A stretch of 63,395 nt of DNA, filler included, from Trichosphaerium sp. ATCC 40318 (lineage: Eukaryota; Protista; Tubulinea): assembly GCA_038496445.1 (NCBI GenBank). It is 3 parts of 3 records of this genome, joined end to end, with 100 filler letters (N's around TTAATTAATTAA, not from the genome) between each part and the next. Parts side by side here need not be neighbours in the genome. Positions count along the whole stretch, not along the records: positions 26,253 to 56,400 come from JALMLS010000067.1; 2 more parts are not named here. One strand, written 5' to 3'. Shown here one piece after another: positions 3,013 to 54,100 of the stretch (position 1 is the first letter of the stretch; each line of letters begins with the position of its first letter). A model generated the notes under the pieces. That model worked only from the letters and a program-made list of their open reading frames with translations. It was not told the origin of the DNA and did no database searches. The position numbers were made by a program, and so were the translations under genes.

Positions 3013-5381
3013 CCTTTTGCATCAGAGTTTTTAAAGCAGATAGCTGCATTTAAAATAAATTCTCATCAGACCAAAGGTGGTTGAGGTTTTTAGGTGGTTT
3101 TTTGAAGAATGAACTTCATAAGAAACCATTCAATCTTTATTCCTATTCTCTTTCAAGGAGGATGTAAGATGAAAGTCTTTTTGATGAACATCACAAATAC
3201 CTGGTGCCGGACAACATCAGCCTTTCTTGTTGGAGAAGAAGCTGATGTGTCTTGGTTATGGTTTTTATGGCAAGAGATGCTCATAGAGCACATTGCCACA
3301 ACAGCATAGGGTTGTGTCTTTTTAAAGGACTACTTTTCTTGATGAGTCATGCCTATTTTTTACTGAGTAGCCCTTGAGGCATCGTCGGTAATAGCTTGCA
3401 ACTGCATCATTTTTCATACACTCTTTTTGTTTTGATTTTGTTTACTATTCAAGTACTTGGACTGTGCCTTTCCTTGTTGAGTCTTCAAGTTGTAGCAACT
3501 TGGCTACACTTGTTGTGTTGATGTACTTGGCTTGTGTGCCTTTCCGTCAATTTGCCCTTTTCACATTTCTGCTTCAGGCTCACATCTATTATTACCCAAG
3601 TACTTGATACTTTGTCTTTCCATTGGGTTGTTTTGGATGTGATACAGCTTTTGCGGATTGATTGGAGCACTTTGACTCCTGTCGTCCACCTAAGCATGTG
3701 ACTTTGCACATACTTAGAGCTGTATTGTTGTATGACTCTGAACTCGATTAGCATTTCTACACTCCAAATGGGTGTTATAATGCTAGAAGAGAAACACAAG
3801 TTCATACATATGGTAGGTTGTTGCCCACTAAGGGCTTCAATCTGCCATTCTTTTGTACACTACCGTATTGGTGTGATTAACTCACACACTTGGAAACATG
3901 TACTTTTAAGACTTGCAACTCGATTAGCATTTCTACACCTCTTAGTGAGTGTTCTAATGCTAGAAGAGAATGAAAGTCTATCAGTATGACTCGATTAGCA
4001 TTTCTACACTTCAAAGTGTTCTGATGCTAGAAGATATCATATCTGTTTTGTATACATGTTAGTTGTTGCCCACTGAGGGCTTCATACTAAATGCTTAAAG
4101 TATTGACTGTTCTAAGCTATTGCCCACTGAGGGCCACAAAACTCATTTACAGCATGTTGATGACAAATGACTCGATCGACATCTCTTTATCAATCTGTTA
4201 TTTTTTCATAACAGAGATAAGATGAAGGAGGAGTGTACAAATTGTCTATGTGTTTGTAAACAATACCATTTTGCCCACTCGGGACAATGATGGTGTTGTA
4301 TCTCAAACGATATACATAAGCGGACTACTTTCGTGTCACTAAACAACGTTCACCATTATTAGGTGTCGTTGTTATGTGTCTCATTGAGAGTTACATACAC
4401 ATACCCAAGGACTCGATTAACATTTCTACGCTCGTTTCAAATTTTTTTTTTTAAAACTGTGCGTTATAATGTTAGAAGAGAACCCTCTGTTATTGGAAGT
4501 GGATACAGTATTAAAATAGCTGCTTATTACATACACACATAACCAACTGGCATCGTCATCGATGGATATACTAAGAGGCGAGTGGTAACTCGTCCTTTTC
4601 TATCACATAAGAAAAGCTAGAGTAGCCATCACTGTGGTGTATGTGCATGTGCGTAAGCGCAACTAAAACGCTGATATCCAATCTTCACTTGAGAAGAAAG
4701 GGATTTTTACTGAGGTTGCACAGCAAACAGGACTTACAGTCATATGCTCAAAAACGCTCACAAAAACTCAATAAAGTTTCTTGTTCTCGCGATAGATGAA
4801 TACAGACTAGCCTTTCCGCTATGCTTGGCGACCTGTTTCTGTAGTTTACAGAGAGACATGCCACCATATATTCTCAGATGTTGAGGCAGAAATCGATTAC
4901 CACTGCCCTTTGTACTGATGTAAGCTTTTTAATATTACAATCTTCCAATATAGGGTGCTTATGTGGTAGAAGACAACAGCGTCCTAGGTCCTTGCTCTCT
5001 ACCCTCAGCACTCGATCAACGTATAGGAGTATGATTCAAGTGTGATAGCAGAGTCACCGCAAATGTGCTGCACGACGGGCGGACCCATAGTCATCGTACA
5101 CTCCCTGTGGGCTCTTTCGTTGGGAATAACAAAGGCTGCGCGGTTTTTTTTAAGATGCATACAAAATTGTACGCTCGCGACTGACCGATCCTTTTTTTTT
5201 GTCTTCTCAATTTCGCCAAGGGAAGAGAATCGATTTCTGTACGCGCCCAACTGCTCATTTTTTTTTAACGCCCTTCCTCGCAGGTAAATCGCCTGGCGGT
5301 TTAGGGGAATTATTTTTTCGTTGGTGCCTCATAGTCTTTTCTCCATTTACGCCTCCGTTAGGCTACACGGTTGTAAGACTG
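3013..5381. ncRNA. rDNA-upstream structured region (candidate 5' ETS or antisense RNA) with repeated conserved hairpins
   Basis: No credible ORF. Recurrent hairpins CTCGATTAGCATTTCTACAC..GTGTTCTAATGCTAGAAGAG and GCCCACTRAGGGC. About 3740-5381 is homologous to 44286-45596 with compensatory changes. Confidence 0.6.
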
Positions 5382-26252: not shown

Positions 26253-26520
26253 GATGACATTGTTATTGGGTTTTGGTTAGTACAAGGTCTTTCATGTTGA
26301 AGGAATAGTAACAAAGAATACAAGTAATATACATAAGCGAGTCATTACTTAACTAGCTCATTAAAATAGTTCATTTGGTGTTTCCACAATTTGCGACAAA
26401 AAGACATTCACTCATACTATAGTTCCCTTGCAAAATGAGTATGCTTCTGAATCAAACACCAACGGATCTAGAAGAGTAAGTTCACGTTTCAATGCAGCAA
26501 ATACACGTGTTTTACTGTTA

Positions 26521-27837
26521 ATGGCAACATTTAGCATTGAGAGGCCATTAGAACTGCTTTGGCTGCCGATAGAGATTATATTTTGTATCCTGGCGTTTTT
26601 GGGCAACAAATGTCGTATATCCGCAACATTCGTTTGTAAACTCTTTTCTACGATCATTTTGAATCATTTGGGTTATTTTGAGGTGACTGTCAAGTCAAGA
26701 GAAGAGCTACTCACACTAAACGGAAGTCCTCTTTTAAAAAACACAAAAGTAGTTATTGATATTAGTACATTGACTGATGATGACTTTAAAAGTATTTCTG
26801 GTGTCCACCACCTGGAAACAAGCGATTGTGTATCACCAACAGATACTATGTTAGAACATATTTCAGGTGTACATCATCTAGAACTACGTATAAGAAAACG
26901 TGGATGCAAATTGACACGTTTTGGATTTAAATCACTTCATGGTATCCATACACTCATTGTATCATGTGCGCATTTAAAAGATGAATGGATTCAAGAACTT
27001 GAGGGTATCCATACAATCGATATTTCGCACACATCTATAACTGATAAAGGACTTGCAGCACTCTCTGGAGTTCATACTATTAATTTAAGTGAGTGTTATA
27101 ATATCAGTGATAAAGGTGTTATTGCCATTTCAGGCAGTGTACACAAGATACTGCTTAATCATTGCTATATTACAGATAAAAGTGTAAGAGCACTAACAAA
27201 TGCAAGAGCAATATCATTGGCTAGTACAAATATTACAGATGAAGGATTAAAGTACTTGTTGACTCAAAATCGAGTGACAAACATCATTAACAAAATTAAT
27301 CTTGATTGCATTCAAATATCAAATAATGTATTGAAACTCCTGGCTGGTATTCCTTGTGTAGAGATTCGTTATTCCCAACTAAATAGCAATACCCTGTCAT
27401 GTTTGGTAGGAATACAGCATATTACTTTGAGAGCGTGCAATGTATCAAATGATGCTATAAAGCAATTGGCAGGTGTTAAAATGATTGATATTTGTTGTAT
27501 TGCTTGCGTTGATGATAGTACTTTAAAGGCACTTGCAGGAGTACATACAATTTTCCTCGATTCAACATCTGTGACAGATAAAGGTCTAGGCTACTTGGTT
27601 GGCGTTAAAGTCATTAGCCTTTGTGAATGTAAGCTTATAACAGATAAAGGAGTGAATAGCCTTATTGGTGTCAAGGAAATTGATCTGGGAGACTGTTCAC
27701 AAATCACAAATGATGGAGTTGTTAATTTAACAAGCCTTGATTTCCTGTACTTTTATGGTACCCAAATAACACAAAGAATGGTTTATAAACTAGGATGCAA
27801 CACAAGCTACTCACACCAATTGTGGCCAAAGTTTTAA
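26521..27837 (+). CDS. F-box-like/leucine-rich repeat protein, intronless
   Basis: LLWLPIEIIFCILAFL F-box-like motif followed by ~21-22 aa repeats of the type ITDKGLxxLxGVHTIxL. Confidence 0.85.
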   Translation: MATFSIERPLELLWLPIEIIFCILAFLGNKCRISATFVCKLFSTIILNHLGYFEVTVKSREELLTLNGSPLLKNTKVVIDISTLTDDDFKSISGVHHLETSDCVSPTDTMLEHISGVHHLELRIRKRGCKLTRFGFKSLHGIHTLIVSCAHLKDEWIQELEGIHTIDISHTSITDKGLAALSGVHTINLSECYNISDKGVIAISGSVHKILLNHCYITDKSVRALTNARAISLASTNITDEGLKYLLTQNRVTNIINKINLDCIQISNNVLKLLAGIPCVEIRYSQLNSNTLSCLVGIQHITLRACNVSNDAIKQLAGVKMIDICCIACVDDSTLKALAGVHTIFLDSTSVTDKGLGYLVGVKVISLCECKLITDKGVNSLIGVKEIDLGDCSQITNDGVVNLTSLDFLYFYGTQITQRMVYKLGCNTSYSHQLWPKF

Positions 27838-31300: not shown

Positions 31301-34300
31301 ATGTCTGATCTTACGCCTACGGAACCAGGTACGTACAATTTTTTCTATCCCAATTTAGACCACAAGCTCACGTTTTTTTTTTGTAAAATGCTGAAATGGT
31401 TCTTCAGCATGCCAAGAATCAATTGGTCAAAACAACCCCAAAATATTTAGTGGTGTGAAGTCACGTGAACAAGCAAAAAAGAAAAAACAGCTTTTTCTTT
31501 TTAACGTTTTGATTTTGATCCCAAGTTGGTGCTAATTGTGCTCATAAAGGTAAACAGCAGTATTTTACTGAGCTGCATAATGACGAAGGCACTCTCATAT
31601 ACAAAGGTAACTTTATGGACAGCACCTATCATGGTACTGGAGAGAAGTATAGGTCGTCAGATGGTACACTCTTATACAAAGGAAATTTTTCGCATGGTGA
31701 TTACCATGGTACAGGGCAATTATATTGGGAAAATGGTAACATCCAACGTAAAGGTATATTTAAGTACAATCGCCTTCAGATAGGAGAGTGTTATAGGCAA
31801 GATGGTACACTCTTATACAAAGGAGAATTTGAGCAAGGTGATTACCATGGTACAGGACAATTATATTGGGGAAATGGTAACATCCAATATAAAGGTGAAT
31901 TTAGGAATAATTGCCTTTGTAGAGGAGATTGTTATAGGCAAGATGGTACCCTCCAATACAAAGGAGAATTTTGGGGCAACTCAAGATACATACCTAAATT
32001 TATGGGGACATTTCATGGTAAGGGAGTGTTTCTTTATCAAAATGGTACCAAGTACATTGGACAATTTGACAACGATAAGTTCCATGGTATTGGTGAGAAG
32101 TATTGGCCAGATGGTCGTAAATACATTGGTAAATTTGAACACAACAAGAAGTCAGCAAGCGGCAGTAAAAAGCAGAAAACTATTGCTGGAAACCCAGATC
32201 AGGTTGCCTTTTCTAATATTGTGGATACAATATTCTCTTCCCCTAGCATAAAAAATATAGACGACCAAAGTATAATAGAAGAAGTTCGGGTGTTTACACA
32301 ACATACTAGCGCTCACAGCAACTTATTTATGATTCCCAAAATCATCGATATTGCAACAGACAAATTAAACTTTATAGGCATGTGTACATCACAAAAAAAA
32401 GTATTTGAAGTATATTCTAAGAGTGAATGTATATTGGTTAAAGATGCTATAAAGCAGCACCAAGCAGTACAAAAATATGGCAACAATGTAGATTGTTATT
32501 GTGATTTTGTATTTATCTATGACCTTTGTAAAAAAGATCCTGAGATATCACTTCATGAAGGTGCGGTGTCTTTTATACCACTATCTTTATACTTATTGAT
32601 TATTTAAATAGTAACAACTATGGCACGTGGTATTTCTAGAGCACGTGTGATACCCATAAAAAAGGACACGCTATCAGACGAAAAGATACAACAGTTCCGA
32701 TATTACTTTCGGTATGGTTGTGACAAACTGGATTCGGTAATTAGCTGTGGTATTGTTAATGGAGTGTGTCATGAAAAATATGATTTTGATGGTTCTGAGC
32801 AATTGGAAGCTAAAATAATGGTTATGGGACATGAAGGATCAGGTATTTTATCAAAGTCGGATGATTGATGATACTCTAATTATTAATTAGGCAAGACAAC
32901 ACTTGTGAGGACATTGGCAAAGGAAACAAATAGAATAGCGGATTCAACAATTGGTTTTGATACATCACATCTCTCGTATGTTCTATGTTATGGTGCCATA
33001 ACTTTAATCCAATTTAGTTTACATGGCGTATCATTCACAGTGTTAGACTTTGCTGGACAGACGGAATATAAAGGATTACATAAGTACTTTTTAGCAAGGC
33101 AACTCACTATTTACATCATCGTTGTAAGTTCATAGTGCACCAATATCACGCTTGCTTCCTTATCATTCACCAACTTTAGATTGACTTGTCAACATCAATC
33201 AAAGAGCAACAGGAGCACCTCAAATATTGGTGTCGGGCTTTAAATGAGATACTATTTGGCCAAGATCCAAAGTTATACTCGGTGATTGTATTTGGATCCA
33301 AATTGGATATCTTTTTAGGAGATATCAAGGCCAATAAACAAGCATTGATTCCTATAGGACTATCACTAGTACAGTACTATGCTTAGACGGTACCACCTTT
33401 ATACGTTTTTACAATCGCTTATCCTTACTGTTTAGGAACAAGTGCTCTCGTCAAATTATTGGAGCATCAAGCCAAGTACTTGAAGGCCCAATATCCTAGA
33501 GTACCTTCAATGTACATAGATATCAAGAATGCACTTGAGAAAATCACAAACAAGGATACTCTTAAGGACAACATCATATCAATGTACGTTGTGTTAGTGT
33601 ATTTAATATTGTCACTAACTAGTACTCAGAAAGAAGCTAATAGAAGAAAAGTTTATTAAAAAGTCCACTACATGTATAATGTCTCCAATAGAGTTGGTTG
33701 CTGCATTAAATTACATTCATTCCATTGGTAGCATCATGTTTGATGAGGTATGTGCTTCTTCAACTAGGAGTATACTTGCTTAACAAACTGATTTTACCAT
33801 ATTTAGTCGTCATACATGCTGTGTTTGCACCCTCCTATTCTATCTCGTATCATGAGTGCTTTTCTAGCACCCAAAGAACATCTTGATAGATTGATCAAAA
33901 ACAACACTCATAATCATCATGCTGTATTCACTGACTCAGAAGCTAAATCTCGAATCTCAAAGCTATTTCCAAAATGCACTAAACGTGAAGTGAAGCAGGT
34001 GATGAAATTCTTGGTACAAATGTCGTTCTGCGTTCGCTTGACAGAAGAAGAAAAGGTAACAGATAGTGTATGTACTCTACAACTTTTTCTCAATGTAGTT
34101 ATTCAGGTTGTGTATGGCGCTGATGGATACCTTATTATATCGCTATTACCTAAAGCTGATATGCTTTACTTTCCTCCATTGACCCAAAAGGAGCAAAGTA
34201 TTACGTTAGTTCAGACAAAGAACAAAAACTCACATGAGTTACCAGAAGTATTCTCTTTGTCTAAATCACCAACAAAGTGGAAGATATTATCATACACACC

Positions 34301-36149
34301 TACAACAGACTCTAAAGTTGAACATAAAGTGATAGAAACAGTCACCATAAACAAGGAAAGCAATAAAATAGTACGGCATATTCCATAATTCAAAACTAAC
34401 AATATCACGTGTTAGTCACTACCTGATCAATATGAGGTCATACCACATGTTTCAAAGTTCTTGGCATACACTTTTAACTCGCAAGATCTACCTATAGAAA
34501 TATTTAATGACTTGCAGAGAAGACTGAGAAGTATGCCAACATGAACGGTTTATGATTATGATTAGATACTAAACACTTGTACAATAGAGTTCCAAAACAA
34601 AGAGTTTCGTTTGTTTTCAAACTTGATTGTACTCTCTGATTTCTACGGCAATATCATCACATTATATTATATTGATCATAGCATCAAAGTTATCATTAGA
34701 GGGATAGTACCACAGCTATGGACGGTAATAACAAATCATCAAGCGAAATTATCTGATAACATCTTTAGGTATCTCTTGATGCTTATTTAAAATCTTTGGA
34801 CATCACTCCAGTTCCACTCTGTCCTATTAGCGTACAATTTGGAGAGTTTGTTGAAGTTACAAACAGTTCATACACATGCAATAAAACAAGTGCGTTTTTT
34901 GGCATACAAGTTAACAAACTGATCATTTGTTAGAACATGTTGTCACTGAGAGTCATTTAAAAGAAGGATTTCCTTTACAAAAACGTGGACGACATAATCT
35001 ATGGGGTAGCCTGCACGGAGAAAAATTTCTGAAAATAGGTGACTGGGAAACACCTCAAAAGTATCCTGGGTTACAAATCACGTTTCTCACAAAAGATGAG
35101 AAAAGCAAGGTACAAACCACATTTGAATACCATGACTTTCTTACTAATTGATATAAGGCGTTATGATGAGTATCTGAGGGCTAGCAACATGTTTTATAAG
35201 TTCATGGGGACTGACAGTGCTTCATTTTATGAGTTGGAGAAGATTGCGTTCTTTAACAATCCAAAACTTGAGGAGCAATACAATACTTTTGTCAAGAAAG
35301 TACTTCAATCCAAAAAATCAGGCAAGTCACACCCTTCTTGGTCAGCTTTCCCCAACAGTTTAGATGTGAATGACAATTCCACTGTGGATGAAGATACACG
35401 TAAATCACAAGAACGGACTCTGAATCATTTGAAGAGCTATGTGATGCGTGTTTCAGGCAATGAGCAAATCAACCTCATACCTGGATTACACGGTACATCA
35501 GAGGTACATCACATTTATTTTCATCAGTACCTAACCTTAGATTTTAGGATACTAGTTTTAAGATCGCTTTGGGCAACTTTAAAGAACCTCAGGAGAATAC
35601 AAACAAGAAAGATGGAGGATACTTTGGTATGGCTTAGTAATAAGTTAGTTTAATTTACTAATTGTAACCAGGAAATGGGATTTACTTTACTCAGTATCCT
35701 GATTGCGGTATGTCATTTTATACAACTCTTGGCCACTACCCATGTACCAATTTGTATTATTGTATTAACAATCGAGGTAGGAAGGAAGTATGCTGAATGG
35801 GATAAAAAGGAGAAGAATCCGTGCATGTTGATATCATGGATAATGATGGGAAACCCTTATCCAGCAACAGAAAACCCTGTACCAGGTGATCCCAACTCTC
35901 TTTATGGAAAAGAATGCAAGGTACAACTCTTTTTTTCTTATGGACTTCTTATACTTTTGTTTTTAGAAAGGTTATGATTCTCACTATGTACTCACTAAAT
36001 CAACTGGGTTTCCATGTGGCATTGATGATACGCACAACAACTTTTGTGTACAACATTTCAAGCATTGTATACCATTGATATTACTGGTATCAATGTTTGA
36101 GAATACCACGTGGAAGGCAATTAATACAATGAAAAGCATATTAGTTTGA
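31301..36149 (+). CDS. MORN-repeat / Roc GTPase / COR / PARP-like ADP-ribosyltransferase protein (Roco-ART), multi-exon, ART C-terminus replaced
   Basis: YKGxFxxGxYHGTG MORN repeats; KIMVMGHEGSGKTT, STIG, DFAGQTEY, GSKLD (Roc); LNYIHSIGSI, LVQMSFC (COR); LHGTSE, GYFG.GIYFT, GYDSH (ART). Start uncertain. Confidence 0.85.
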
Positions 36150-36248: not shown

Positions 36249-37400
36249 TTAATCTTTACATAGTGAATCAATAACATCTTGCAGGACAGCACGCTCCTAT
36301 ATACACGAAATTAGCACGAAAAACAATGACAATGCTGGAAAAAACAACCTTTTTGCTGACAAGGTCAAACTCTTCAATGAAATAATGAAAGTGCTTGAAA
36401 GCACTATTCAAATGAGCTTCTTCTCCCAAATCTTTGATCTTTGAAAAGTGTTCATAGTATATATGAGCGTAAACACGGAACAGCCTAATCGCTGTATTAG
36501 TAAAGTTACAAAACTCAAAACGGAAGCAAGGCTTTTTTGGATTTTTTTTTTTTTGGAAATTTCGTTCTTTTTGACTTAAAAATGTCAGTTTCTTTGATTT
36601 GTTGCCGCCATTGCTTAATATGTTATTAGGTATAAATATAACATACCGTTTAAAAATAGTTTTGACAAGATTTACAAAATCACGAGGGAATGGTGCCGTT
36701 TCATCAATTGGAAAATAGTGTTCATCAGCAATTTTACTTTCAATCCAAGCCATAAGCTTCTCTACATACACAACTGCTGGAACAGATTCTGGTTTACCAT
36801 CTACATAAAATACTTAACGTGATATGGTCAATTAAAGCCATTAATGAACGTGAGCGAGGTGTGAAAGTTGAGATCTCTTTTTTTTTTTTTTTTGTTGTTT
36901 GGCGTTACCTTCTGCCCATAGATATTCATAGTTCGGTCCTGCTGTCATACGAGGGTAGTCTTTGACGTTAACATACTCAGCTATTGAACCAAAAAGGAGG
37001 TTTGTGTTATTAAAAAAGTCTATTGTGTTTACTGCAAGCCATTCTATATAAAAACTATTAGTACGTGATACGTTATCGCCTCTTCATCTATTTTAAAACG
37101 AAAACGAGCGTTTATAAGAAAGGCAAGTACTACTTCGTTTTCAACAGTTAAAACGAATAGCTCGTACCATTTAGGTTCTCTCCTATTGTTTACGATGAGT
37201 ATAACTGCGATAGTAATAATAGTCAAACAAATTGCACTTGGCGTACCAGGAGGTAGCTTTACTAGCTCTTTGACCTTTGAACCAAGCCCTAACGTAGCTT
37301 TTGTATCTTTGGTGTGCAATTGGAATCTTGATCCTTTGTTATGTCCTTTCTTTGGTTTAAAGGTCTTATCTTTGCTACGTTGGAATATCTTCTGGTGCAT
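36249..37400 (-). CDS. MOB1: MOB kinase activator 1-like, multi-exon
   Basis: KTFKPKK, VKLPPG, EWLAVNTIDFFN, MTAGP.YEYLW, RLFRVYAHIY and EEAHLN. Confidence 0.95.
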
Positions 37401-37513: not shown

Positions 37514-39870
37514 ATGAGTGGTCCAGGTTATATCCCTCCTGCGCAACCAGGCTATTCCTCGCCTTTCGATAACTGTACAAGAAAATTGCGTTACGATAGC
37601 AACTTTAACCAGTATTCTAGCAACACAAGAACCTGGGCATAACGGAGAGTACGCAGATGAAGGTCCTGGCTTTTTTGACGATTCAATAAACACGCAATAC
37701 AATGGCCCTAATTACGGTCAACCACAACCGTACCAGCAACCACCACAACAACCACAACCATATTATACAGTACGACAGACAAAATACTAAAAAGCAACGT
37801 GGCATTAAAACTCGTTTAAATCGCCTAATTTCACGCTAAATCATATACTACTCTGTATTCTAACGCGCGTAGCAACAAGAACCACAACAGCAACCACAAC
37901 AGCCATATCAGCCTGTACAACCAGTACAACAGCCTCAATATGGTGTTGGGTACCAAAACCCGCAACAAACTGCCCCAGGAAGTACGTTCACTAAAGAAAA
38001 TCTGTTTTTTGAAATGACGTCACGTTATTAACGTTTTTTCTCTAGTAGCCGCACCTTTTGCACAAATGGGCGGTCAAGCACCTTTCCAGAATCCTATTGC
38101 GAATGTAGCAGCTACTATTGGCGTAGCACAAGCAGGGGTATGGTAGTAAGAAGATAAAACGTTGTCGAATTTTTTCTGACTTTTTGAAAAAAAAAACCAC
38201 GTGTTTGTATTTGAAAGAGCCTTTTTCGTAGTATAATAAGCTACAGTGGGCGCTTTTTTTAAATTATTAGTGACTACTTTCATTTGGAAAGAAATTGTTT
38301 TTTTTCTGTTTCTCTGCTTCAGAAACTTCTTCTTTTGGACCGCTTTTGCTATCAAGTATCCTGTAAATTGTAAGCAAGTGTTTGTAGCTTAATTGGTTAG
38401 AGCCGTCCGCTGTTAACGGGAAAGATGGTGGTTCAAGTCCACTCAAACACTCTTTTGTCTTGCACACTTTTTTTTTGTTTTTTAATTTGGGGTCTTCCTG
38501 TCGGTTCCTTTTTTCTTTGTTTTTGTGCTTATTCTCTTTATAGGGTTATATTGCAAAAAGTCAAGCTGTTACTCAACAATGGTTCCAGTGGTTAAAGTAC
38601 TACTTTGCTGTTAATAATAGATATGTTTTCAATAAGCTTGGTATAGTAATTTTTCCAGTTGCTCATAAGGTACGCTTAAATTTATTTAAAGTACATTAAT
38701 AATAAGATTTTTCAAAAAACGCTATTAGAAGCTAAGCATTGGTTGTTTTCGTTCTTTTTTTTTTTGACAGCTGAGTGTCAAATGACATTTTGTTTCTTAT
38801 TTTTTTCTGTCTTTTTCCTTTTTCAAATGATTATTAGTTTGTTTTTCTGACTTATAGTGTAGTCATGGTCTCGTGGTACAGGTGGAAATATTGGTCATGA
38901 GGTATTTCTACCACCTGACCAAGATCCAGCATACAATGCACCTGATCTATACCTACCCGTCATGTCATTTATCACCTACGTCTTAATCATGGGCGTATTT
39001 TTTGGTACTACATTAAAGTACGTTTTTTCACACAAAAAAAAATCCCATGAAGACTTCCATCTGTTTACCTCTTAGACATGTATCTGAGCTATTAGCAAAC
39101 AAACAATTTTATATGCTTTGTTTTTTTATTGGCTCGTCAAGGTCATGTCCAGCTTTGGTAGTTTTTTTTTTCTTATTGTTTTGTTTGGTCACTTATGTTT
39201 TTTTTTCTCTTAGATTCACTCCTGAGGTCATTGGAAGTGTTGGTACAAGTGGTTTAGCAGTTTGGGGTTTTGAAGTTTTTTTGATAAGTGCTGGACTTTA
39301 TTTACTCGGTTTCCGTAATTCTGTATCTCTCCTTGATATGATAAGCTATAGTGGTTACAAATTTGTTGGGTACGTTTTTTCTGGCGACTATAATGTTGAT
39401 GCGCTTTTTTTTTGCTTTTTTTGACTTTGTTTTTGGTTTAGGATGGTTGTAAACGTTTCTGCAGGCATGATTTTTGGATCTTATGTTTTTTATGCATGTC
39501 TTATATTCAATTCTATTATGGCCTCTATTTTCATGGTACGTTCTATGAAGGAAACCTCGAACCTTTTTTTTTTTTTTTTTTTGTAAAATCAAACAAAAAA
39601 ACTTGTTTCTCTCGGCCTACTGTTAGACCTTATTTATTATTTCTTTAGGTTAAAACATATAGATTGGTTATACCTAAACAGACACAATACCAATCACAAA
39701 GGAATTACTTTTTACTTTTCATTGCAGCACTTCAATTTTTGATTGCATTTTTCTTATGTTATCTTGATTTCAAAGATGGTATTTTCTCATCTATGAGCAC
39801 TGGTAGTACTATGGGATCAGCAGCTTCTGTAGATCCAGGTATACCGAAAAATACCCAAACATTATCATGA
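37514..39870 (+). CDS. YIF1: YIF1 ER-Golgi membrane protein, multi-exon
   Basis: LKYYFAVNNRYVFNKL, NAPDLYLPVMSFITYVL and YSGYKFVG; Q/P-rich N-terminus; head-to-head with MOB1 (~110 bp apart). Confidence 0.92.
38378..38451 (+). tRNA. trnN: tRNA-Asn(GTT), inside a YIF1 intron
   Basis: Acceptor GTGTTTG/CAAACAC, D-arm GCTT..GAGC, anticodon loop CT-GTT-AA, T-arm GGTGG-TTCAAGT-CCACT; TTTT downstream. Confidence 0.88.
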
Positions 39871-41082: not shown

Positions 41083-41349
41083 AAATCACGAAGGCACCTC
41101 TTGTAACAACTAAAAAAAGAAAAAAGTAAGAATTGTTTCTGTGCTCAAATACCTTGGTGTTCAGTACGTGATCATGAAAATCTCCACTTTTTTTTTTCAA
41201 AATCGCCACTTTTTTATTCTGTCCCAATAGTTGTTTTACACCTTAGTTTACTCCCCAAAGCCACTACAGCATTGTTTCAATGTGTAACACAAATCTGCTA
41301 ATGTCATAGACCTTCAGACAACTTACTAAATAAGGAAAAAATGGTATAT

Positions 41350-43519
41350 TTATTGAGTCGCTCCAAAGCGTTGTACAGGCACTGAAACACGCTTTGTATG
41401 CTGTGTTTGTAAGCGCTGTTTTAACACAACCTCTCCATCAGGTAGCACTTGTTTAACTTCATGGCTTAAACCAGCTGCAAGTCCAAGAGCTTTTTTTTGT
41501 TTTATGATGATAATTCTTTTCTTTTTAGTACTAGAAAGAAGGGGTTTTTTGTGTCGTACAATGATCACAGTCTTTCTCTTTTTTTTAGGTGGTACCATTG
41601 AAGGTTTTAGGCTTTTGCGCTTGCGATTTGCTTTCTTCTTTTTTTCTTCTTCCTTTCTTTCTTTTTCTTCCCGTTTTTTTCTTTTTTTGTCAATTTTGTG
41701 TTGCATACTCAAGACCAGAGGAGTATTGTTTACTTCTACAAATAAAACATTAACATTATTTAAAGAACGTTGTAAGGGTAGTACTTTTTTGTTCATCTTT
41801 TTTTAAAGCAGCTTGTTTCCTTTTTTCTGTAGTAGAATGAGGGGTACCACTGCCTTTAACACCTTCTATAACACGGAGTGCTTCTTTACAACTGGCTACA
41901 GTGTATTTGACAAGAGTGTCAACTACATGATCAGTGATACTTCCTTTGGCACCATATAATTTAAGCACCTGTTGAACATTGCTGTTGTTGCCTTCACTAA
42001 TATTATTGGTTCGATTATTGAGATGTTCTGGGTTGTTACAACAAAACTGAGCCCATGTCTTAGGAGGAAACCTAAAAGAATGTAAGCAACATATGTAGAA
42101 CCAATTAAAACGTGTACTTGCTGACATCATTGCTTGGTGTTACATAATTGTCTTCTAAATATTGCATATATTTTTTGATATTACCACCTGCTATTATAGC
42201 ATCCTGTAGATAACAACCATTAGTACTACAACCACTCAAAATACAATGTACCTCTTTGAATTTGTTCCAAAGCTTCCAAAACTGCTTTTCCTCCGGACAA
42301 GTTGTTAAATCCTTACTAAACTGGGTACACCAAGCATATTCGGCCTTGTTCTTTTCTCCACCCAACCCACATTTCATACGATTCCTTCTATGAGCTTCTG
42401 CCACATGAAATAAACAGTGGTAGACAGGCATATCATCTCCCCAAACTTTGAAAGCAGCTAAGCGTTAAATTAACATTTTTTCAGTCAGTTTTTTTACCTT
42501 TTTTCAAATTGACCTCACAGTCAGCCATCATCCGTAAAAAGACAGGACCAAAAACTTCGTTTAGATGCTCAAAAGCATACACATACTCTGGTAATGTTTT
42601 ACCTTCTGTTAAAGCCCATCCGATATTAGTTCCCTTAGATGCAACAGGGCCAACAGCTTTCAACCAATACATTAATGTCTACAAAAAAAAAATAAGCAAA
42701 AAAATTGTGTCTTTTTCTTTACGTGAGATCCAGCATCCGTTGAGTTGTGAACAGCATCCACAAACAATGTTTGTTTATTTAACTGTTCTATTAAAGGTAC
42801 AGCTAAAGGCTCAATGTATGATATGACAGTGTGTTTGGCCATATTTATATACACTGCTTCTCGGTACTTTAGTTTGATGTTTGCGAACACCTGTTGGCGT
42901 AGAGTAAGCCTTAAATAGCATATAAAAAAGATTATGATGCAAAAGGTACCTCAGGGTTTTTTCTTCCTTCTGCGCGTTGTAGACGCACTCTATACATTAA
43001 CGCATTGTTTGTTGGTACTATGGAAGCATTTAAAGGGTTTTTCGCAGCACATAAAGTATTAATAGCCTAAACAGCAATTGAATACTTTAAAAACACCTTG
43101 CTACGCACGATCACCCTTTTAGACACTCCTTTTTTATAATCTGTTTGAATTTCGTGTCCAATGGAATATTTCAACTTAAAGTTCTTTACTGGATCTGGAG
43201 TGCACCCAGGAACATGTTCTACACTTTTTAAACAACATTTTCTACAAAGAAACTCACGTTTTGTTAACTTCACCATGCCTATTTTGCCAACTTTTGTTTT
43301 GTGAGAGTGTATGTTTAAGCGTGCTGAACATTCCGAGTGATTGCATTCAAAATAGTATGAAATCTTCTCAGGGTTTTTTTTATGAGGCTTGCTGCCCTTT
43401 CGAGTAAATTGGTACCCATGTGAGCGTGCAGAGCTTGTGTAAACAATTGCACGCTCATTTGGCACCCAATCTATTAAATTAAGGTCTCCCACGCCTGGGT
43501 CTATTACAACAGCTGCCAT
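41350..43519 (-). CDS. MULE DDE transposase, multi-exon, with WRKY/FLYWCH-like zinc finger
   Basis: YYFECNHSECSARL..H; LFVDAVH (D1), MMADCE (D2), YHCLFH (CxxH), RTNNISEG (E); Lys-rich tail. Frame break at a homopolymer near 41800. Confidence 0.88.
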
Positions 43520-43579
43520 GCCATGATTGCACTTGTTTTTACTGGTTACTTTTTTTGGCGCTAAGTTTGCCTTCCTTAT

Positions 43580-44280
43580 ACCATGTCACCTTTAGTTATT
43601 CCGTGTTACTCTTAGTAAGGTACACTGTGTTACTCTTAGTTTATTCCATGTTACTTAGTTTATCCCGTGTTACTTAGTAAGGTACACCATGTCACCCTTA
43701 GTTTATCCTGTGTTACTCTCAGGTCATATCTTTTTGTGTCACGCGTACTAAGGTACACTGTGTTACTCTTAGTTTATTCCGTGTTACTTGGTACACCATG
43801 TCACCCTTAGTTTATCCCGTGTTACTCTTAGGTCATACCTTTATGTTACTCTTAGTTTATTCCGTGTTACCCTTAGTTTATTCCGTGTTACTTAGTAAGG
43901 TACACCATGTCACCCTTAGTTTATCCTGTGTTACTCTCAGGTCATACCTTTTCGTGTTATGCGTAGTAAGGTATACTGTTACTCTTAGGTTATACCGTGT
44001 TACCCTTAGTTTATTCCGTGTTCCTCTTAGTAAGGTACACTTAGTTTATTCCGTGTTACCCTTAGTTTATTCTGTGTTACCCTTAGTTTATTCCGTGTTA
44101 CTCTTAGTAAGGTACACTTAGTTTATTCCGTGTTACCCTTAGTTTATTCCGTGTTACTCTTAGGTCATACCATGTCACCCTTAGGTCATTCTGTGTCAGT
44201 TACATCATACCATTTCTTGTAGAGCAGGTATTCTGTGACTTTTAGTAATGTCCATGTCCTTAAGGTATACCTTAGGTGTT
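43580..44280. repeat. Minisatellite of ~20-bp units CTTAGTTTATTCCGTGTTAC interleaved with AAGGTACACCATGTCACC units
   Basis: Directly visible tandem array between the transposase start and the structured cargo. Confidence 0.9.
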
Positions 44281-44285
44281 ATAAA

Positions 44286-45596
44286 CTCGATTAGCATTTC
44301 TACACCAAAATGAGTGTTTTAATGCTAGAAGAGTAGTTGGAGCTCATTAAAAACTTGAACTGAGTTTGAATGTGACAACTACTGGAGTTGCTACATATTC
44401 TTGAGCTAGTCAATGCGTCGATTAACTTTATTACACTCATTGTTGGTGTTGTAATGTTAAAAGAGCACATCAAGCATGATGCTATGTTATGAAGGTTGTA
44501 GTCTATGTGATGAAAGCAACACTTATCATTTCTACACTCCAAAAGAGTGTTCTAATGCTAGAAAAGAACATGTGCTTTGGTACACAAGTAGTTGTTGCCC
44601 ACTCAAGGGCTTCAGCTCATGTTGTATTGAACTGTTTGCCCACTCAGGGCTACAATTTTCAACATGTCTAATGGACAATGACTCGATCGACATCTCTTTA
44701 TCAATCTGTCATTTCATTTGACAGAGATAAGATGAAGGAGGAGTACAGGTGTCCATGTTGTACAATAAACATTGATCCACTCAGGACAATATTGTATTGT
44801 GACAATGTCTGTGTTCTAATGATACAAAGCACTTGAGAGTATTTTGTGCCACTAACATCACACACTATTGAAGTGGTTGTGTTGCTGTATCTTTGAGAGT
44901 ACAGTCTCATAACCCAAGAACTCGATTAACATTTCTACGCTTTGTACTAAAACATGCGTTATAATGATAGAAGAGAACTCTTCATTCTGGGAGTGGACAC
45001 AGTATTAAAGCTGCAATTACCACATACCCCTTTTTGTTATGCCTTGATAGACAGTGTTCTGTAACTACAGAACACTGTCATCACCTCAGACGAAAGGTTG
45101 TGTTGGAGCCAGAAGTTGATTACCACTGCCTATGTTGCTATGTTTATTACACATGTTTCATAGGGGCTTACGTGGTAGAAGACGACAGCATCCAGGTCCT
45201 CGTGCTTACCATCACACTTGAGCGCACTCCTGTATTTTGGGAGTGTTGCTTGGGCGTGATAGTCAGTCACCATAAATGTGCTACACGATGGGCGGAACCC
45301 ATGGTCACCGTGCACTCCCTGTGGGCTTGTTCATCGGGTACAACAAAAGGGCTTTCAGACGTCACGCTTAGCTGCATTTTCTTCAAATGCATTTGCATTC
45401 GACTGATTCTTTTTTGTTTTCTCGATTGTGCCAAGGGAAAGAGATGCGATTTCTGCAGGCACATTTCACTCAAATTTTTTCCTTGTCCTTCTGCGCAGGT
45501 AAATCGCCTAGCGTTTATGGGGGAATCTGATTTGGGTTATGCCTCATAGTCTTTTCTCCATTTACGCCTCCATTAGGCTACACGGTTGTAAGACTG
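44286..45596. ncRNA. Transposon-borne paralogue of the rDNA-upstream structured region
   Basis: Collinear similarity to ~3740-5381 with non-triplet indels and compensatory stem changes; shared terminus CTCCATTTACGCCTCCRTTAGGCTACACGGTTGTAAGACTG. Confidence 0.75.
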
Positions 45597-46430
45597 CGAA
45601 TTTATTGAGTTTTCACGCAGCACACTACACTCATCACATTCTTATAACTCTGAATAGGCAGGTATTGTACGTTACAATAATTTTTTATTTTTATTTTTTT
45701 TTCTACAGTACAGCCGGCGACAAAAATCACGTGAAGGTACAACAAAACTGTTTTTTTTTTTGTAAAATTGGGCTTTATTAATAAATTACAGGTTAAAAAA
45801 CCAGTTGAGAGTATTTAAACCATATATAAAGGGAAGACAGCCCGTTCCTCACCACAATGACCCAAACTGACTATGCGAAAGGAAATCTCCACCTTTTTTG
45901 CCTAGCCGTTCATGGTACTGTACCTTCCGCTGTTTGAATCAACAACCAACGCCTACACATAACACGTTAACTACAAACAAAAAAAAAAAACACCAAAAAA
46001 AGTGGCAACAAAAAGTGGCGATTTTGCATGTCACCGTTCAGTAATACTAGTTTCAGCACAATCTAGTGCTTGAGGAACGTTTCAAGTTTATAAACGCTTA
46101 ATACGCTGGCTGTTAAACAAATGCTGTTTTTGTAGTGGTGAGCATGAGTGAACCTTTTTACACGTGGTGTCTACGCTCCAAAAGTATCGATAAATTTGTG
46201 AATCTAGCCATTGGCTTGTACACCTTTTTGACATCTTCAATGCGAGTACCTGGGGCCATTGATACTTTGAATGTATAACAAATTAGCAGGAATATGAGGT
46301 ACAGATATTACTACTATAAGTGCCCGCGAATTCCACGTTTCCTGTGAGGCTTTAAAGAGCTGGCGGATAACTGTATCTTTATTATCTGGTTCATTGGTGT
46401 ACACCCTAAACTTTTGTAACTCTTAAACTC

Positions 46431-49400
46431 CTAAATCTCCAATACATCCTGAACTTTACTCGTGACGGAAACCTTTTTGTACTTTTTCTTGAGGTATTTT
46501 GCCTTCGACACGTCTCCTAATACTTGTTAACAAAAAATCATGTGATTAATAAAAGGGGTAGTTAACATACCACAAAAAACAATAATAGGTGTTTTGGCAC
46601 ATGTTTTCATTTTTCTAATGCTCTTGATCAATTTCTCTGCTGCTAGCTCGTCTTCATCACCTTTTCGATATCTATTTGTGATGATACGTAACCTGTTGTT
46701 ACAGAACCCTTTGAATTTATCAATCCATCCCAAGACCTCAAATGATGACTTCATTACCAATACCTTTGTAGTTCTTTAGATGAATGGCTGTATTTGGTTT
46801 GTGTACCTCTGTCTTCTTTGGCCTGTTTTTAAGCATTTCCATAATCTTCTTGTTTTCAACTGATAGATTAGCGTCAACCCACAAAACAAGACATTTAGCA
46901 TCCCTGTACTTGGGTCCATATGAGTCGATATTGGTACTGTCTATTGCTTTGTAGTATACAAGGTATCGTGGAAGAATCTAAATCATGAAATAAGAACACA
47001 TCGTGGCTATGGTGATGTCTACATACTTGGTTTTTTGAAAATACAACAATCTCGTTTTGATCTATTTTATCGTCAATGCCACATGGAAACCCAGTTGATT
47101 TAGTGAGGACATAGTGAGAATCATAACCTTTCTAAAAACAAAACTATAAGAAGTCACATAAGAAAAAAAAGAGTTGTACCTTGCATTCTTTTCCAAGAAG
47201 AGAGTTGGGATCACCTGGCACTGGTTGTTCTGTCACTGGATAAGGTTTTCCCATCATTATCCATGATATCAACATGCATGGATTCTTCTCCTTTTTATCC
47301 CATTCAGCATACTTCCTTCCTACCTCAATTGTTAATACAAGAATACAAATTGGTACATGGGTAGTGGCCAAGAGTTGTATAAAATGACTTACCACAATCA
47401 GGATACTGAGTAAAGTAAATCCCATTTCCTGGTTACAATTAGTTAATTAAACTAACTTGTTACTAAGCCATACCAAAGTATCCTGGATCTTTCTTGTTTG
47501 TATTCTCATGTGGTTCTCTAAAGTTGCTCCAAGCGATCTTAAAACAGTATCCTAAATAAAATCTAAGGTTAACTATTTCTTGGTACTGATGAGAATAATG
47601 TGATGTACCTCTGATGTACCGTGTAATCCAGGTATGAGGTTGATTTGCTCATTGCCTGAAACACGCATCACATGGCTTTTCAAATGATTCAAAGTCCGTT
47701 CTTGTAATTTACGTGTATCTTCATCCACAGTGGAATTGTCATTCACATCTAAACTATTAGAAAAAGCTGACCAAGGGTGTGACTTGCCTGATTTTTTGGA
47801 TTGAAGTACTTTCTTGACAAAAGTATTGTATTGCTCCTCGAATTTGTCTTCAGGTGTTGGATTGTTAAAGAACGCAATCTTCTCCAACTCATAAAATGAA
47901 GCACTGTCAGTTCCCATGAACTCATAAAACATGTTGCTAGCCCTCAAATACTCATCATAACGTTCCTTATATCAATTAGTAAGAAAGTCATGGTATTCAA
48001 ATGTGGTTTGTACCTTGCTTTTCTCATCTTTTGTGAGAAACGTGATTTGTAACCCAGGATACTTTTGAGGTGTTTCCCAGTCACCTATTTTCAGAAATCT
48101 TTCTCCATGCAAGCTACCCCATATATTATGTCGTGCATGTTCGAGTAAAGGAAATCCTTCTTTTAAATGACTCTCAGTGACAACATGTTCTAAGAAATAA
48201 TCAGTTTGTTAACTTGGAAATATGCCATCTGGTTGTATAATATATGACAACTACATGTGTATAAATGTATGCCTAATACACTCACTTGTCTTTTTGCACT
48301 CATACGAATTGTTTGTAACCTCAACAAACTCTCCAAATTGTATGCTGACTGGACATAGCGGAACCGGAGTGATGTCCAAAGGTTTTAGGTATCAGGTCTA
48401 AAAAAATATACCAGTTTTTTTGGTATATACCACTTTTATACCACTTTTTTATACCAGTTTTTTATGGTATATACCAAAAAAAGTGGTATATTTTGACCGA
48501 AATATACCAAAAAAAGTGGTATATTGACCAAATATACCAACAATATACCAAAAAAAACAGGTATAAAAGCAGAAAATATACCACTTTTTTTCACCAGAAA
48601 AAAAAAAATATACCACTTTTTTATACCACTTTTTTTAGGTATATACCAGGTATATACCACTTTTTTATACCAGTTTTTCATGGTATATACCACTTTTATA
48701 TACCACTTTATGCCTACTTATGGTACACCTGCAATTCCAGAAAATACACTTTATTTAATACACAGTTTGTGAGCTACAAGTTTTGGACAATGTCCACTAC
48801 AGTTACATTACTATGGGCATCTGGAAAATTCGTCCATCTCTATGAGCTTGCTGTACCTACTGTAAAAACATGCTGCGCACCTAATGAAAGTGGTCCCACC
48901 TGAATCCATCAATTACTAAGGCCTACGGAGGTCGGTTAATGTATATCAAACGAAAATAAAATAAAACTTTGTCTGGTACCCACGAACGTCTGTATAATAC
49001 CTGCAATGTATGTTCCTTAATGTTGGTACTGGAATCAGATCCTGTGGTTCGAATGAGCTTGGTTTGGTTAGATTCTATGATATACTAAGGTCCCTACGCA
49101 CCGTTCAATGTATGACATCTATGATCGTTCAACAAGAAAACCCATTACCAAAAAGCTCCTTAATGACCTTCTTGAAGCATACCATAAAAGTGGTATATAC
49201 CAATAAAAAGGTGGTATATACCACATACCATAAAAAAGTGGTATATACCACTTTATATACCATTTTTAGAAGGTCTCATTATGTGAATGAAAAGTGGTAT
49301 ATACCACTTCCATATACCACTTTTTTATTCACTTAATTTCTAAAAAAAGTGGTATATCAAAATGGTATATACCAGTTCATATACCATTTTGTTGAAAAAA

Positions 49401-51108
49401 GTGGTATATACCATAAAAAAACTGGTATATACCACTTTAATTTTTAGACCTGATGTATCAAGAGATTCCTAAAGATTTCAATGTTTAAACTTCTAGTTCA
49501 TGTTATTACCATCCATAGCCGCGGTGCTATGCCTCTAATGACAACTTTGATGCTATGATCAATATAATATAATGTGATGATATTGCCATAGAAATCAGAG
49601 AGTACAATCAAGTTTGAAAACAAACGAAACTCTTTGTTTTGGAACTCTATTGTAAGTGTTTAGTATCTAATCATAATCATAAACCGTTCATGTTGGCATA
49701 CTTCTCAGTCTTCTCTGCAAGTCATTAAATATGTCTATAGGTAGATCTTGCGAGTTAAAAGTGTATGCCAAGAACTTTGAAACATGTGGTATGACCTCAT
49801 ATTGATCAGGTAGTGACTAACACGTGATATTGTTAGTTTTGATTGTTGAAATACGCCGTACTATTTTATTGGTTTCCTTGTTTATGGTGACTGTTTCTAC
49901 CACTTTATGTTCAACTTTAGAGTCTTTTGTAGGTGTACGATAATATCTTCCACTTTGTTGGTGATTTAGATATAGAGAATATTTGTGGGTTCTTGTTCTT
50001 TGCCTGAACTAACGTGATACTTTGCTCCTTTTGGGTCAATGGAGGAAAGTAAAGCATATCAGCTTTAGGTAATAGCGATATAATAAGGTATCCATCAGCG
50101 CCATACACAACCTGAATAACTACATTGAGAAAAAGTTGTAGAGTACATGCAATATCTGTTACCTTTTCTTTTTCTGTCAAGCGAACGCAGAACGACATTT
50201 GTACCAAGAAGTCCATCACCTGCTTCACTTCACGTTTAGTGCATTTTGGAAATAGCTTTGAGATTCGAGATTTAGCTTCTGAGTCAGTGAATACAGCATG
50301 ATGATTGTGAGTGTTGTTTTTGATCAATCTATCAAGATGTTCTTTGGGTGCTAGAAATGCACTCATGATATGAGATAGAATAGGAGGGTTCAAACATAGC
50401 ATGTATGACGACTAAATATGGTAAAATCTTAGCAAGCATACTGCTCTTATTTTGAGAAGCACATACCTCATCAAACATGATGCTACCAATGGAATGAAGG
50501 TAATTTAATGCTGCAACCAATTCTATTGGAGACATTGTACACGTCTTGGGTATCACTTCTAATACTTTCCTCCTAATTAAATACTTGATCAGCAAAAGCA
50601 AGATCCACTGCAGCTAACACACAACATACACTGATATGATGTTACCCTTTAGGGTATCCTTGTTTGTGATTGTATTCTCAAGTCCTTTTTTTATGTCCAT
50701 GTAGATCAATGGTACTTTTGGATATTGGGCCTTCAAGTACTTGGCTTGATGATCCAATAATTTAACAAGAGCACTTGTTCCTAAACAACAAGGATAAGCG
50801 ATTATAATAATGTACAAAGATAGTACCGTCTAAACACAAGTACTGTACTAGTGATAGTCCAATGCGAATAAAGGCCTGTGTATTGGCCTTGATATCGCCT
50901 AAAAAGATATCCAGCTTGGATCCAAATACAATCACTGTGTATAGCTCTGGGTCTGATCATGTGGGTCATACCACATATTTGAGGTGCTTGTTGCACTTTG
51001 ATTTGACAAGTCTCCTAAAGTTAATGAATGATTGGAACAAGTGTGAAAGAACTGAACGATGAAGGAAAATTGTGATTGAACTAAACACTTAAATTGAGTT
51101 GCCTTGCT
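46431..51108 (-). pseudogene. Roco-ART paralogue (Roc end, COR, complete ART, receiver-like domain), disrupted by a MITE, 5' part missing at the fold-back junction
   Basis: High similarity to ~33090-36030; continues NEIVVFQKNQ/ILPRYLVYY then LVLWVDAN..LRIITNRYR..TPIIVFCG. Confidence 0.85.
48393..49452. mobile_element. Non-autonomous TIR element (MITE-like, 1060 bp) with AT target duplication
   Basis: Termini CAGGTCTAAAAA/TTTTTAGACCTG; many subterminal GTGGTATATACCAC palindromes. Removing it plus one AT restores LDTYLKPLD, matching LDAYLKSLD in the uninterrupted paralogue. Confidence 0.92.
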
Positions 51109-54100
51109 AACAAAGAGTTTCGTTTGTTTTCAAACTTGATTGTACTCTCTGATTTCTATGGCAATATCATCACATTATATTTATATTGATCATAGCATCA
51201 AAGTTGTCATTAGAGGCATAGCACCGCGGCTATGGATGGTAATAACATGAACTAGAAGTTTAAACATTGAAATCTTTAGGAAATCTCTTGATACATCAGG
51301 TCTAAAAATTAAAGTGGTATATACCAGTTTTTTTATGGTATTATACCACTTTTTTCAACAAATGGTATATGAACTGGTATATACCATTTTGATATACCAC
51401 TTTTTTTAGAAATTAGTGAATAAAAAAGTGGTATATGGAAGTGGTATATACCACTTTTCATTCACATAATGAGACCTTCTAAAAAATGGTATATAAAGTG
51501 GTATATACCACTTTTTTATGGTATGTGGTATATACCACCTTTTTATTGGTATATACCACTTTTATGGTATGCTTCAAGAAGGTCATTAAGGAGCTTTTTG
51601 GTAATGGGTTTTCTTGTTGAACGATCATAGATGTCATACATTGAACGGTGCGTAGGGACCTTAGTATATCATAGAATCGAACCAAACCAAGGCTCATTCG
51701 AACCACAGGATCTGATTCCAGTACCAACATTAAGGAACATACATTGCAGGTATTATACAGACGTTCGTGGGTACCAGACAATGTTTTATTTTATTTTCGT
51801 TTGATATACATTAACCGACCTCCGTAGGCTTAGTAATTGATGGATTCAGGTGGGAACACTTTCATTAGGTGCGCAGCATGTTTTTACAGTAGGTACAGAA
51901 AGCTCATAGAGATGGACGAATTTTCCAGATGCCCATAGTAATGTAACTGTAGTGGACATTGTCCAAAACTTGTAGCTCACAAACTGTGTATTAAATAAAG
52001 TGTATATTTTCTGGAATTGCAGGTGTACCATAAGTAGGCATAAAGTGGTATATAAAAGTGGTATATACCATGAAAAACTGGTATAAAAAAGTGGTATATA
52101 CCTGGTATATACCTAAAAAAAGTGGTATAAAAAGTGGTATATTTTTTTTTTTCTGGTGAAAAAAAAGTGGTATATTTTCTGCTTTTATACCTGTTTTTTT
52201 TGGTATATTGTTGGTATATTTGGTCAATATACCACTTTTTTTGGTATATTTCGGTCAAAATATACCACTTTTTTTGGTATATACCATAAAAAACTGGTAT
52301 AAAAAAGTGGTATATAAAGTGGTATATACCAAAAAAACTGGTATATTTTTTTAGACCTGATACCTAAAACCTTGGACATCACTCGGTTCCGCTATGTCCA
52401 GTCAGCATACAATTTGGAGAGTTTGTTGAGGTTACAAACAATTCGTATGAGTGCAAAAAGACAAGTGAGTGTATTAGGCATACATTTATACACATGTAGT
52501 TGTCATATATTATACAACCAGATGGCATATTTCCAAGTTAACAAACTGATTATTTCTTAGAAACATGTTGTCACTGAGAGTCATTTAAAAGAAGGATTTC
52601 CTTTACTCGAACATGCACGACATAATATATGGGGTAGCTTGCATGGAGAAAGATTTCTGAAAATAGGTGACTGGGAAACACCTCAAAAGTATCCTGGGTT
52701 ACAAATCACGTTTCTCACAAAAGATGAGAAAAGCAAGGTACAAACCACATTTGAATACCATGACTTTCTTACTAATTGATATAAGGAACGTTATGATGAG
52801 TATTTGAGGGCTAGCAACATGTTTTATGAGTTCATGGGAACTGACAGTGCTTCATTTTATGAGTTGGAGAAGATTGCGTTCTTTAACAATCCAAAACCTG
52901 AAGACAAATTCGAGGAGCAATACAATACTTTTGTCAAGAAAGTACTTCAATCCAAAAAATCAGGCAAGTCACACCCTTGGTCAGCTTTTTCTAATAGTTT
53001 AGATGTGAATGACAATTCCACTGTGGATGAAGATACACGTAAATTACAAGAACGGACTTTGAATCATTTGAAAGCCATGTGATGCGTGTTTCAGGCAATG
53101 AGCAAATCAACCTCATACCTGGATTACACGGTACATCAGAGGTACATCACATTATTCTCATCAGTACCAAGAAATAGTTAACCTTAGATTTTATTTAGGA
53201 TACTGTTTTAAGATCGCTTGGAACAACTTTAGAGAACCACATGAGAATACAAACAAGAAAGATCCAGGATACTTTGGTATGGCTTAGTAACAAGTTAGTT
53301 TAATTAACTAATTGTAACCAGGAAATGGGGATTTACTTTACTCAGTATCCTGATTGTGGTAAGTCATTTTATACAACTCTTAGGCACTACCATGTACCAA
53401 TTTGTATTCTTGTATTAACAATTGAGGTAGGAAGGAAGTATGCTGAATGGGATAAAAAGGAGAAGAATCCATGCATGTTGATATCATGGATAATGATGGG
53501 AAAACCTTATCCAGTGACAGAACAACCAGTGCCAGGTGATCCAACTCTCTTCTTGGAAAAGAATGCAAGGTACAACTCTTTTTTTTCTTATGTGACTTCT
53601 TATAGTTTTGTTTTTAGAAAGGTTATGATTCTCACTATGTCCTCACTAAATCAACTGGGTTTCCATGTGGCATTGACGATAAAATAGATCAAAACGAGAT
53701 TGTTGTATTTCAAAAAAACCAAGTATGTAGACATCCCCATAGCCACGATGTGTTCTTTTTTCATGATTTAGATTCTTCCACGATACCTTGTATACTACAA
53801 AGCAATAGACAGTTACCAATATCGACTCATATGGACTCAAGTACAGGGATGCTAAATGTCTTGTTTTGTGGGTTGACGCTAATCTATCAGTTGAAAACAA
53901 GAAGATTATGGAAATGCTTAAAACAGGCCAAAGAAGACAGAGGTACACAAACCAAATACAGCCATTCATCTAAAGAAACTACAAAGGTATTGGTAATGAA
54001 GTCATCATTTGAGTCTTGGGATGGATTGATAAATTCAAAGGGTTCTGTAACAACAGGTTACGTATCATCACAAATAGATATCGAAAAGGTGATGAAGACG

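Follow-up and report, generated by a model that had tools for sequence, protein, structure and literature searches.

We find that the window, a 63,395-nt stretch of joined genomic DNA (filler included) from Trichosphaerium sp. ATCC 40318 (GCA_038496445.1), contains an autonomous, expressed, and mobile Mutator-like (MULE) cut-and-paste transposon at 41167-46035, and that this element carries a 1.3-kb non-coding cargo block at 44284-45596 that looks like a decaying derivative of a better-folded original. The explanation we prefer, at a probability of about 55%, is the passive capture of structured ribosomal DNA (rDNA) spacer into an autonomous MULE, with the cargo now decaying. The captured sequence is most likely the leader or spacer lying upstream of 18S, an identification that rests on a match with 3740-5381 reported in an earlier, sequence-only reading of the window. 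The analysis covers positions 26253-56400 of the window (about 30 kb, JALMLS010000067.1), together with contigs of the public runs X1, X2, X4, and X5 and public metagenome and viral contigs. Run X1 holds spliced RNA and may include DNA; its run type is a guess, and its contigs are without strand. The element is built as follows.

41159-41166, no strand: left target-site duplication (TSD) GTTCAGTA, an exact 8-bp repeat
41167-41215, plus strand: a short, imperfect left terminal inverted repeat (TIR) in which the CCACTTTTT motif occurs twice; the element starts at 41167 (end comparison; junction in an X5 contig)
41350-43519, minus strand: MULE-type transposase, 8 exons, about 617 aa (open frame, spliced introns, likeness to metagenome fragment L001)
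43519-43097, 43066-42950, 42890-42723, 42678-42498, 42457-42252, 42203-42118, 42071-41785, and 41735-41350, minus strand: transposase exons
43576-44214, no strand: minisatellite with a 21-nt core and higher-order units of 56, 77, and 109 nt
44284-44980, no strand: left half of the cargo, with at least five degenerate 50-70-nt hairpin units (44284, 44414, 44520, 44680, 44919)
44599, 44640, and 44777: three small hairpins that share the loop motif CCACTCA, in the left half of the cargo
44981-45596, no strand: right half of the cargo, unique sequence with long hairpins and a terminal stem closing at 45596
45597-45989, plus strand: segment from the cargo to the right TIR, with intron-like GT..AG stretches at about 45662-45708 and 45737-45791 and a TATATAAA box near 45823 (pattern only)
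45990-46035, minus strand: right TIR (end comparison)
46036-46043, no strand: right TSD GTTCAGTA, an exact 8-bp repeat

As the sequence-only reading proposed, one element is bounded by TIRs and an 8-bp TSD, both found at 41159-46043. The exact GTTCAGTA duplication encloses 41167-46035 and has a chance of about 2e-5 of occurring at this fixed place; its length lies within the 8-11-bp range of MULEs (PMC6446971). The TIRs are about 27-45 nt long, imperfect, and built round the CCACTTTTT motif, with mismatches at the outermost bases, and they fall within the 14-500 bp of MULE TIRs, which may be degenerate. One X5 contig has the left end exactly at 41167 fused to 17 nt of another flank, and this second insertion site attests to mobility. 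No empty target site of the element was found.

The transposase proposed earlier on the minus strand is an open 8-exon frame (43519-41350), whose exons are connected by seven short GT-AG introns. The predicted protein has the residues D225, D289, C311-H314 (CxxH), W400, and E420, i.e., the DDE triad, the CxxH after the second D, and the W before the E expected of MULEs, and it ends in a lysine-rich tail; the corresponding residues of Muta1 from Aedes aegypti are D214/D283/H307/W401/E419 (PMC5225508). It is transcribed in related isolates, as the introns 42458-42497 and 41736-41784 are seen spliced in contigs of X1 and X2. Intron 1 is the least certain of the seven, its donor being uncertain; in one X1 contig the predicted intron 1 (43067-43108) is unspliced, and its retention would stop the frame after 150 aa, leaving a DNA-binding-only product. 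Three X1 differences lie within exon 1, all at third codon positions. The metagenome fragment L001 shows 47-60% identity over three transposase exons with matching intron positions, and it keeps the second D, the CxxH, the W, and the E. The introns of the homologue (L001:60-445 and 1000-1290) are swollen by a short degenerate minisatellite; tandem repeats seem to accumulate readily in this lineage. At its N-terminus the predicted transposase has a weak likeness to WRKY/GCM/FLYWCH domains (Pfam WRKY E value 0.012, below the cut-off; Atlas neighbours GCM, FLYWCH, and DBD_Tnp_Mut at 0.83-0.85). Pfam searches run exon by exon gave no match to a MULE domain, and exon-wise protein searches gave either no match or one short homologous contig without a 5' region; zinc-finger repeat proteins among these matches are spurious. 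A reading of the element as encoding Fanzor or a second gene has no support from open reading frames. Taken together, the TSD and TIRs, the open and spliced transposase, the other flank in X5, the likeness of L001, and the third-position differences in X1 establish the element as an autonomous, expressed, and mobile MULE. It resembles members of the MULE/MuDR superfamily such as Muta1 in the 8-bp TSD, the TIRs, and the DDE/CxxH/W spacing (PMC5225508; PMC6446971), and perhaps also in an N-terminal WRKY/GCM/FLYWCH-like domain, which is a weak match here. It differs from them in its short imperfect TIRs, its seven short introns, and a transposase without a close database relative except L001.

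Upstream of the transposase, the minisatellite noted earlier is indeed found at 43576-44214 with a 21-nt period, and it is followed by the cargo, which folds far better than shuffled sequences (z scores of -6.9 and -5.8 on the plus strand, and of -5.1 and -5.1 on the minus strand). In the left half of the cargo, one hairpin unit of about 50-70 nt is repeated in tandem in degenerate form, a feature overlooked in the earlier reading; the lower stem and internal loops of the unit are fixed and its apex is variable. A five-unit model scan of the 30-kb piece finds such units only in the cargo and its mirror arm. This arm belongs to a 5.3-kb inverted repeat, also overlooked before (44343-49677 mirrored at 56400-51069; 98.8% identical, differing mostly by one-base indels), which duplicates the right TIR, the TSD, and most of the cargo; it either arose by inverted duplication not long ago or is an artefact of long reads folding back. 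The stem TCTGTCA/TGACAGA is present at 44705-44711 and 44719-44725, and GTAAGACTG is found ending at 45596, both as described from the sequence. The core of that description, a structured non-coding cargo in a Mutator-like element with an abundant relative elsewhere (in X1) and no termini of its own, is borne out.

Several other identities of the cargo can be set aside. The 171-codon frame at 45034-45549 is rejected as coding because the differences fall 9/8/4 on codon positions 1/2/3. Rfam covariance models give no match on the cargo (best E value 0.28, far below the gathering score), and there is no Rfam support for a small nucleolar RNA, a microRNA, or a ribozyme. The cargo edges show no TSD, TIR, or termini of their own, and the 30-kb piece holds no other copy of the block except the mirror arm, which argues, for this piece, against an independent nested repeat such as a short interspersed element, a miniature inverted-repeat transposable element (MITE), or a Helitron. 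No rRNA match occurs anywhere in the 30-kb piece.

The relative of the cargo in X1 is far more abundant than the transposase. Dozens of X1 contigs lie on 44238-45538 at a depth of 20-60 each, compared with 2-5 on the transposase (about 10-fold), and on the unique half of the cargo they are 94-96% alike to the window copy. Kept stems are expected because the copy is only 4-6% diverged from the hairpin array. Many of these contigs run from the end of one unit to the start of another through differing 20-28-nt linkers, and since these unit-linker-unit joints are absent from the transposon copy, the more abundant locus carries a longer array. The joints prompted us to consider a CRISPR-like array, which is rejected because the loops vary within the unit and the linkers are mutually alike, as in a degenerate tandem repeat. 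The greater depth and unit number are what an rDNA spacer would be expected to show, and an rDNA unit would suit high copy number and high expression alike. X1 coverage ends just before 45596. On 44284-44340, at least eight X1 contigs of similar depth have the hairpin unit in common and differ in loops and linkers; two X1 linkers contain TTCG, which could form a tetraloop on the plus strand. The TGTTA/TAACA variant at 44705-44725, given earlier for the rDNA copy, is not among the X1 differences listed, and more than two forms of the block may exist. Runs X2, X4, and X5 contain transposase pieces and none of the block, as would be the case if these were poly(A) libraries and the block RNA were not polyadenylated. 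Pattern scans of public metagenome and viral contigs gave no match to the block end or to the hairpin unit, and two bacterial pattern matches agree in number with the roughly two expected by chance.

The X1 depth could instead reflect the copy number of a dispersed or satellite repeat that was inserted separately near the rDNA and in the transposon. The many diverged X1 contigs, the guessed type of that run, and the minisatellite adjoining the block would suit such a repeat. However, the block edges lack a TSD or TIR, there is no further copy in the 30 kb besides the mirror arm, the block is not in X5, a run guessed to be DNA, and the unique right half has as much structure as the array; we consider this origin quite improbable. 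One X1 contig, of depth 4, bridges the minisatellite and the first hairpins (44072-44430), so that the X1 isolate, too, probably has the cargo joined to the element. This contig also bears on whether the juxtaposition of transposase and cargo is an assembly chimera in a fold-back region, as the 5.3-kb mirror with its one-base indels might suggest. It is an independent contig that crosses from the minisatellite into the hairpins, transposase and cargo lie together within the exact TSD, and the cargo and the abundant form are 4-6% different, so that a chimera is very hard to credit.

The sequence-only reading had further inferred that the cargo is under RNA-structure selection in the transposon, which our results do not support. 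In a direction test, 27 of the 34 listed X1 differences, from three contigs of this other strain, were placed on the window copy with indels ignored. Changing window letters to X1 letters gives a summed folding change of -15.2 kcal/mol versus +5.1 for random changes (P<0.005), and the change from X1 to window gives +15.2 versus +17.2 kcal/mol for random changes (P=0.43). This asymmetry points to the abundant form as the constrained one, from which the transposon copy seems to derive by decay; a hairpin intact in X1, for instance, is disrupted in the transposon copy by two changes, at 44830 and 44849. One compensatory pair (45357/45404) is present, and double-sided changes do not exceed the chance level (P=0.17). 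In this small sample, neither covariation nor structure-preserving change rises above chance on the transposon branch.

The strand of the block RNA was also considered. Of the predicted pairs touched by X1 differences, 15 of 22 are kept on the plus strand versus 7 of 21 on the minus strand, and where units differ on one side of a stem, the change is mostly of the G-U type when read on plus, while the fold of the terminal hairpin is better on minus and the unpaired cargo bases are U-rich on plus and A-rich on minus. The counts behind the strand lean are not significant (P 0.09-0.32). If the orientation given by the earlier reading is right, the leader would be the minus strand, and a plus-strand RNA would be a separate transcript. 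The block might be copied from an abundant long non-coding RNA gene that adjoins the rDNA, is separate from its leader, and is read on the plus strand to an end at 45596; its product would be a scaffold of arrayed hairpins or a cluster of small-RNA precursors. The kept pairs and G-U-type changes on plus favour this, as does the repetition of a unit whose internal loops are fixed while its apical loops and linkers vary. The strand tests are indecisive, however, the composition of the unpaired bases speaks against it, the strandless X1 contigs may include DNA, there is no Rfam match, and hairpin repeats are ordinary in rDNA spacers; such a gene seems unlikely to us.

A different possibility is suggested by Pokey, a transposon of the piggyBac superfamily in Daphnia that has repeats of intergenic-spacer (IGS) and internal transcribed spacer 2 (ITS2) origin upstream of its transposase, with a suggested, unproven role in transcription (PMC3849761). 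In a working cis-module of this kind, a piece of the rDNA promoter or leader would drive, enhance, or shield transcription of the transposase, lying upstream of it in the orientation that it has ahead of the 18S and being kept by selection or by gene conversion with rDNA. The position of the block 5' of the transposase, the link between cargo and minisatellite in another isolate at transposase-like depth, the halt of X1 coverage just short of 45596, the better fold of the terminal hairpin on the minus strand, and the Pokey precedent all agree with this. Spliced RNA is a product of RNA polymerase II (Pol II), not Pol I, and the transposase RNA is spliced, pointing to Pol II. In addition, X2 and X4 contain transposase pieces and no block, and upstream Pol I promoter elements would be missing because the earlier match ends at the supposed start. 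Cargo kept in autonomous copies and evolving in concert with rDNA, as in Pokey, is here represented by the one linking X1 contig, alongside differences that look like decay (P=0.43). We therefore hold a working cis-module to be possible but doubtful. Rather less probable still is that the block is an abundant hairpin-array RNA or rDNA leader module, not described before, that is kept working in most copies by an active Mutator family; equally tentative are the roles it would then have, namely nucleolar or Pol I-linked expression, titration of a host RNA-binding or silencing factor, or partnership as RNA with the transposase. To speak of an undescribed system overstates the case, as Pokey carries pieces of rDNA IGS and ITS2 (PMC3849761) and hairpin repeats are common in transcribed spacers (PMC3994965, PMC9935728).

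We thus return to passive capture from an rDNA spacer. Under this explanation, the MULE would have acquired, in its 5' non-coding region, part of a host sequence that is abundant and rich in hairpins, through gap repair or recombination as with Pack-MULEs and Pokey. The stems would owe their form to selection acting at the locus of origin and to one hairpin unit having been duplicated in tandem; the transposon would have inherited them and be slowly losing them, and transposition would not need them. Five points weigh against it. The rDNA link comes from the sequence-only reading and not from the positions covered here; the low-depth X1 contig at 44072-44430 indicates that the cargo is kept in a second isolate; the G-U lean to the plus strand, non-significant as it is, would be antisense to pre-rRNA if the earlier orientation is right; the segment 45309-45538, one of three and the one that holds 45357/45404, is less damaged than random (P=0.045); and the direction test has the restricted coverage given above (27/34 differences, no indels, another strain).

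Pack-MULEs are usually non-autonomous and carry gene fragments. The element is like them in having host DNA within MULE termini and differs in that an open transposase lies beside non-coding cargo; it is not placed in that class, which is non-autonomous and without an intact transposase, because of the open 617-aa spliced model. With Pokey it shares the nature of an autonomous DNA transposon with rDNA-spacer-derived sequence 5' of the transposase (here according to the earlier match). Pokey belongs to another superfamily, targets 28S genes, and has repeats that evolve in concert with the IGS, whereas here one 1.3-kb structured block shows signs of decay and the insertion lies outside rDNA, the piece having no rRNA match of the kind expected for insertion into rRNA genes. 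Tandem hairpin-forming repeats are known in transcribed rDNA spacers, as in ITS1 and ITS2 of Anopheles (PMC9935728, PMC3994965), and the array resembles them in its tandem degenerate hairpin units, conserved base motif, internal loops, and lineage-variable copy number. This likeness is one of architecture, and the array here was placed upstream of 18S by the earlier reading. A 2024 review lists rDNA-type captures by transposons and expects most to be without benefit (PMC10946416). A literature search for a case in Mutator elements turned up nothing other than a paper on the Yarrowia genome.

Between the cargo and the right TIR, the segment 45597-45989 is perhaps a second captured gene scrap, judged by pattern only; no public-run reads fall on it. 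Beyond the element, a 1.07-kb non-coding element at 48388-49455 (mirror at about 51290-52365) has inverted ends and many TGGTATATACCA palindromes, and it has the CCACTTTTT motif in common with the MULE TIRs. A paralogue at about 34780 shows its empty site, and it is possibly a MITE. The regions 33146-36030 and 47068-51046 are an older inverted paralogue of a spliced gene region (87-88% identical). A tRNA gene (38378-38451) lies within an intron of a YIF1-like gene on the same strand, and F-box/LRR, MORN-repeat, and MOB1 genes are found at 26428-27837, 31615-32607, and about 36268-36950. The analysed piece is AT-rich, with introns of 40-60 nt.

If the capture was passive, the few autonomous DNA transposons listed as carriers of rDNA spacer DNA would be joined by another from a second superfamily and from a protist, and its cargo would be a datable copy of a fast-evolving spacer. 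The abundant hairpin array in X1 merits study of its own. If the cargo works, the still unproven idea of transposons borrowing control sequences from rDNA, or structured RNA, for expression or protection could be tested on a compact and deletable piece.

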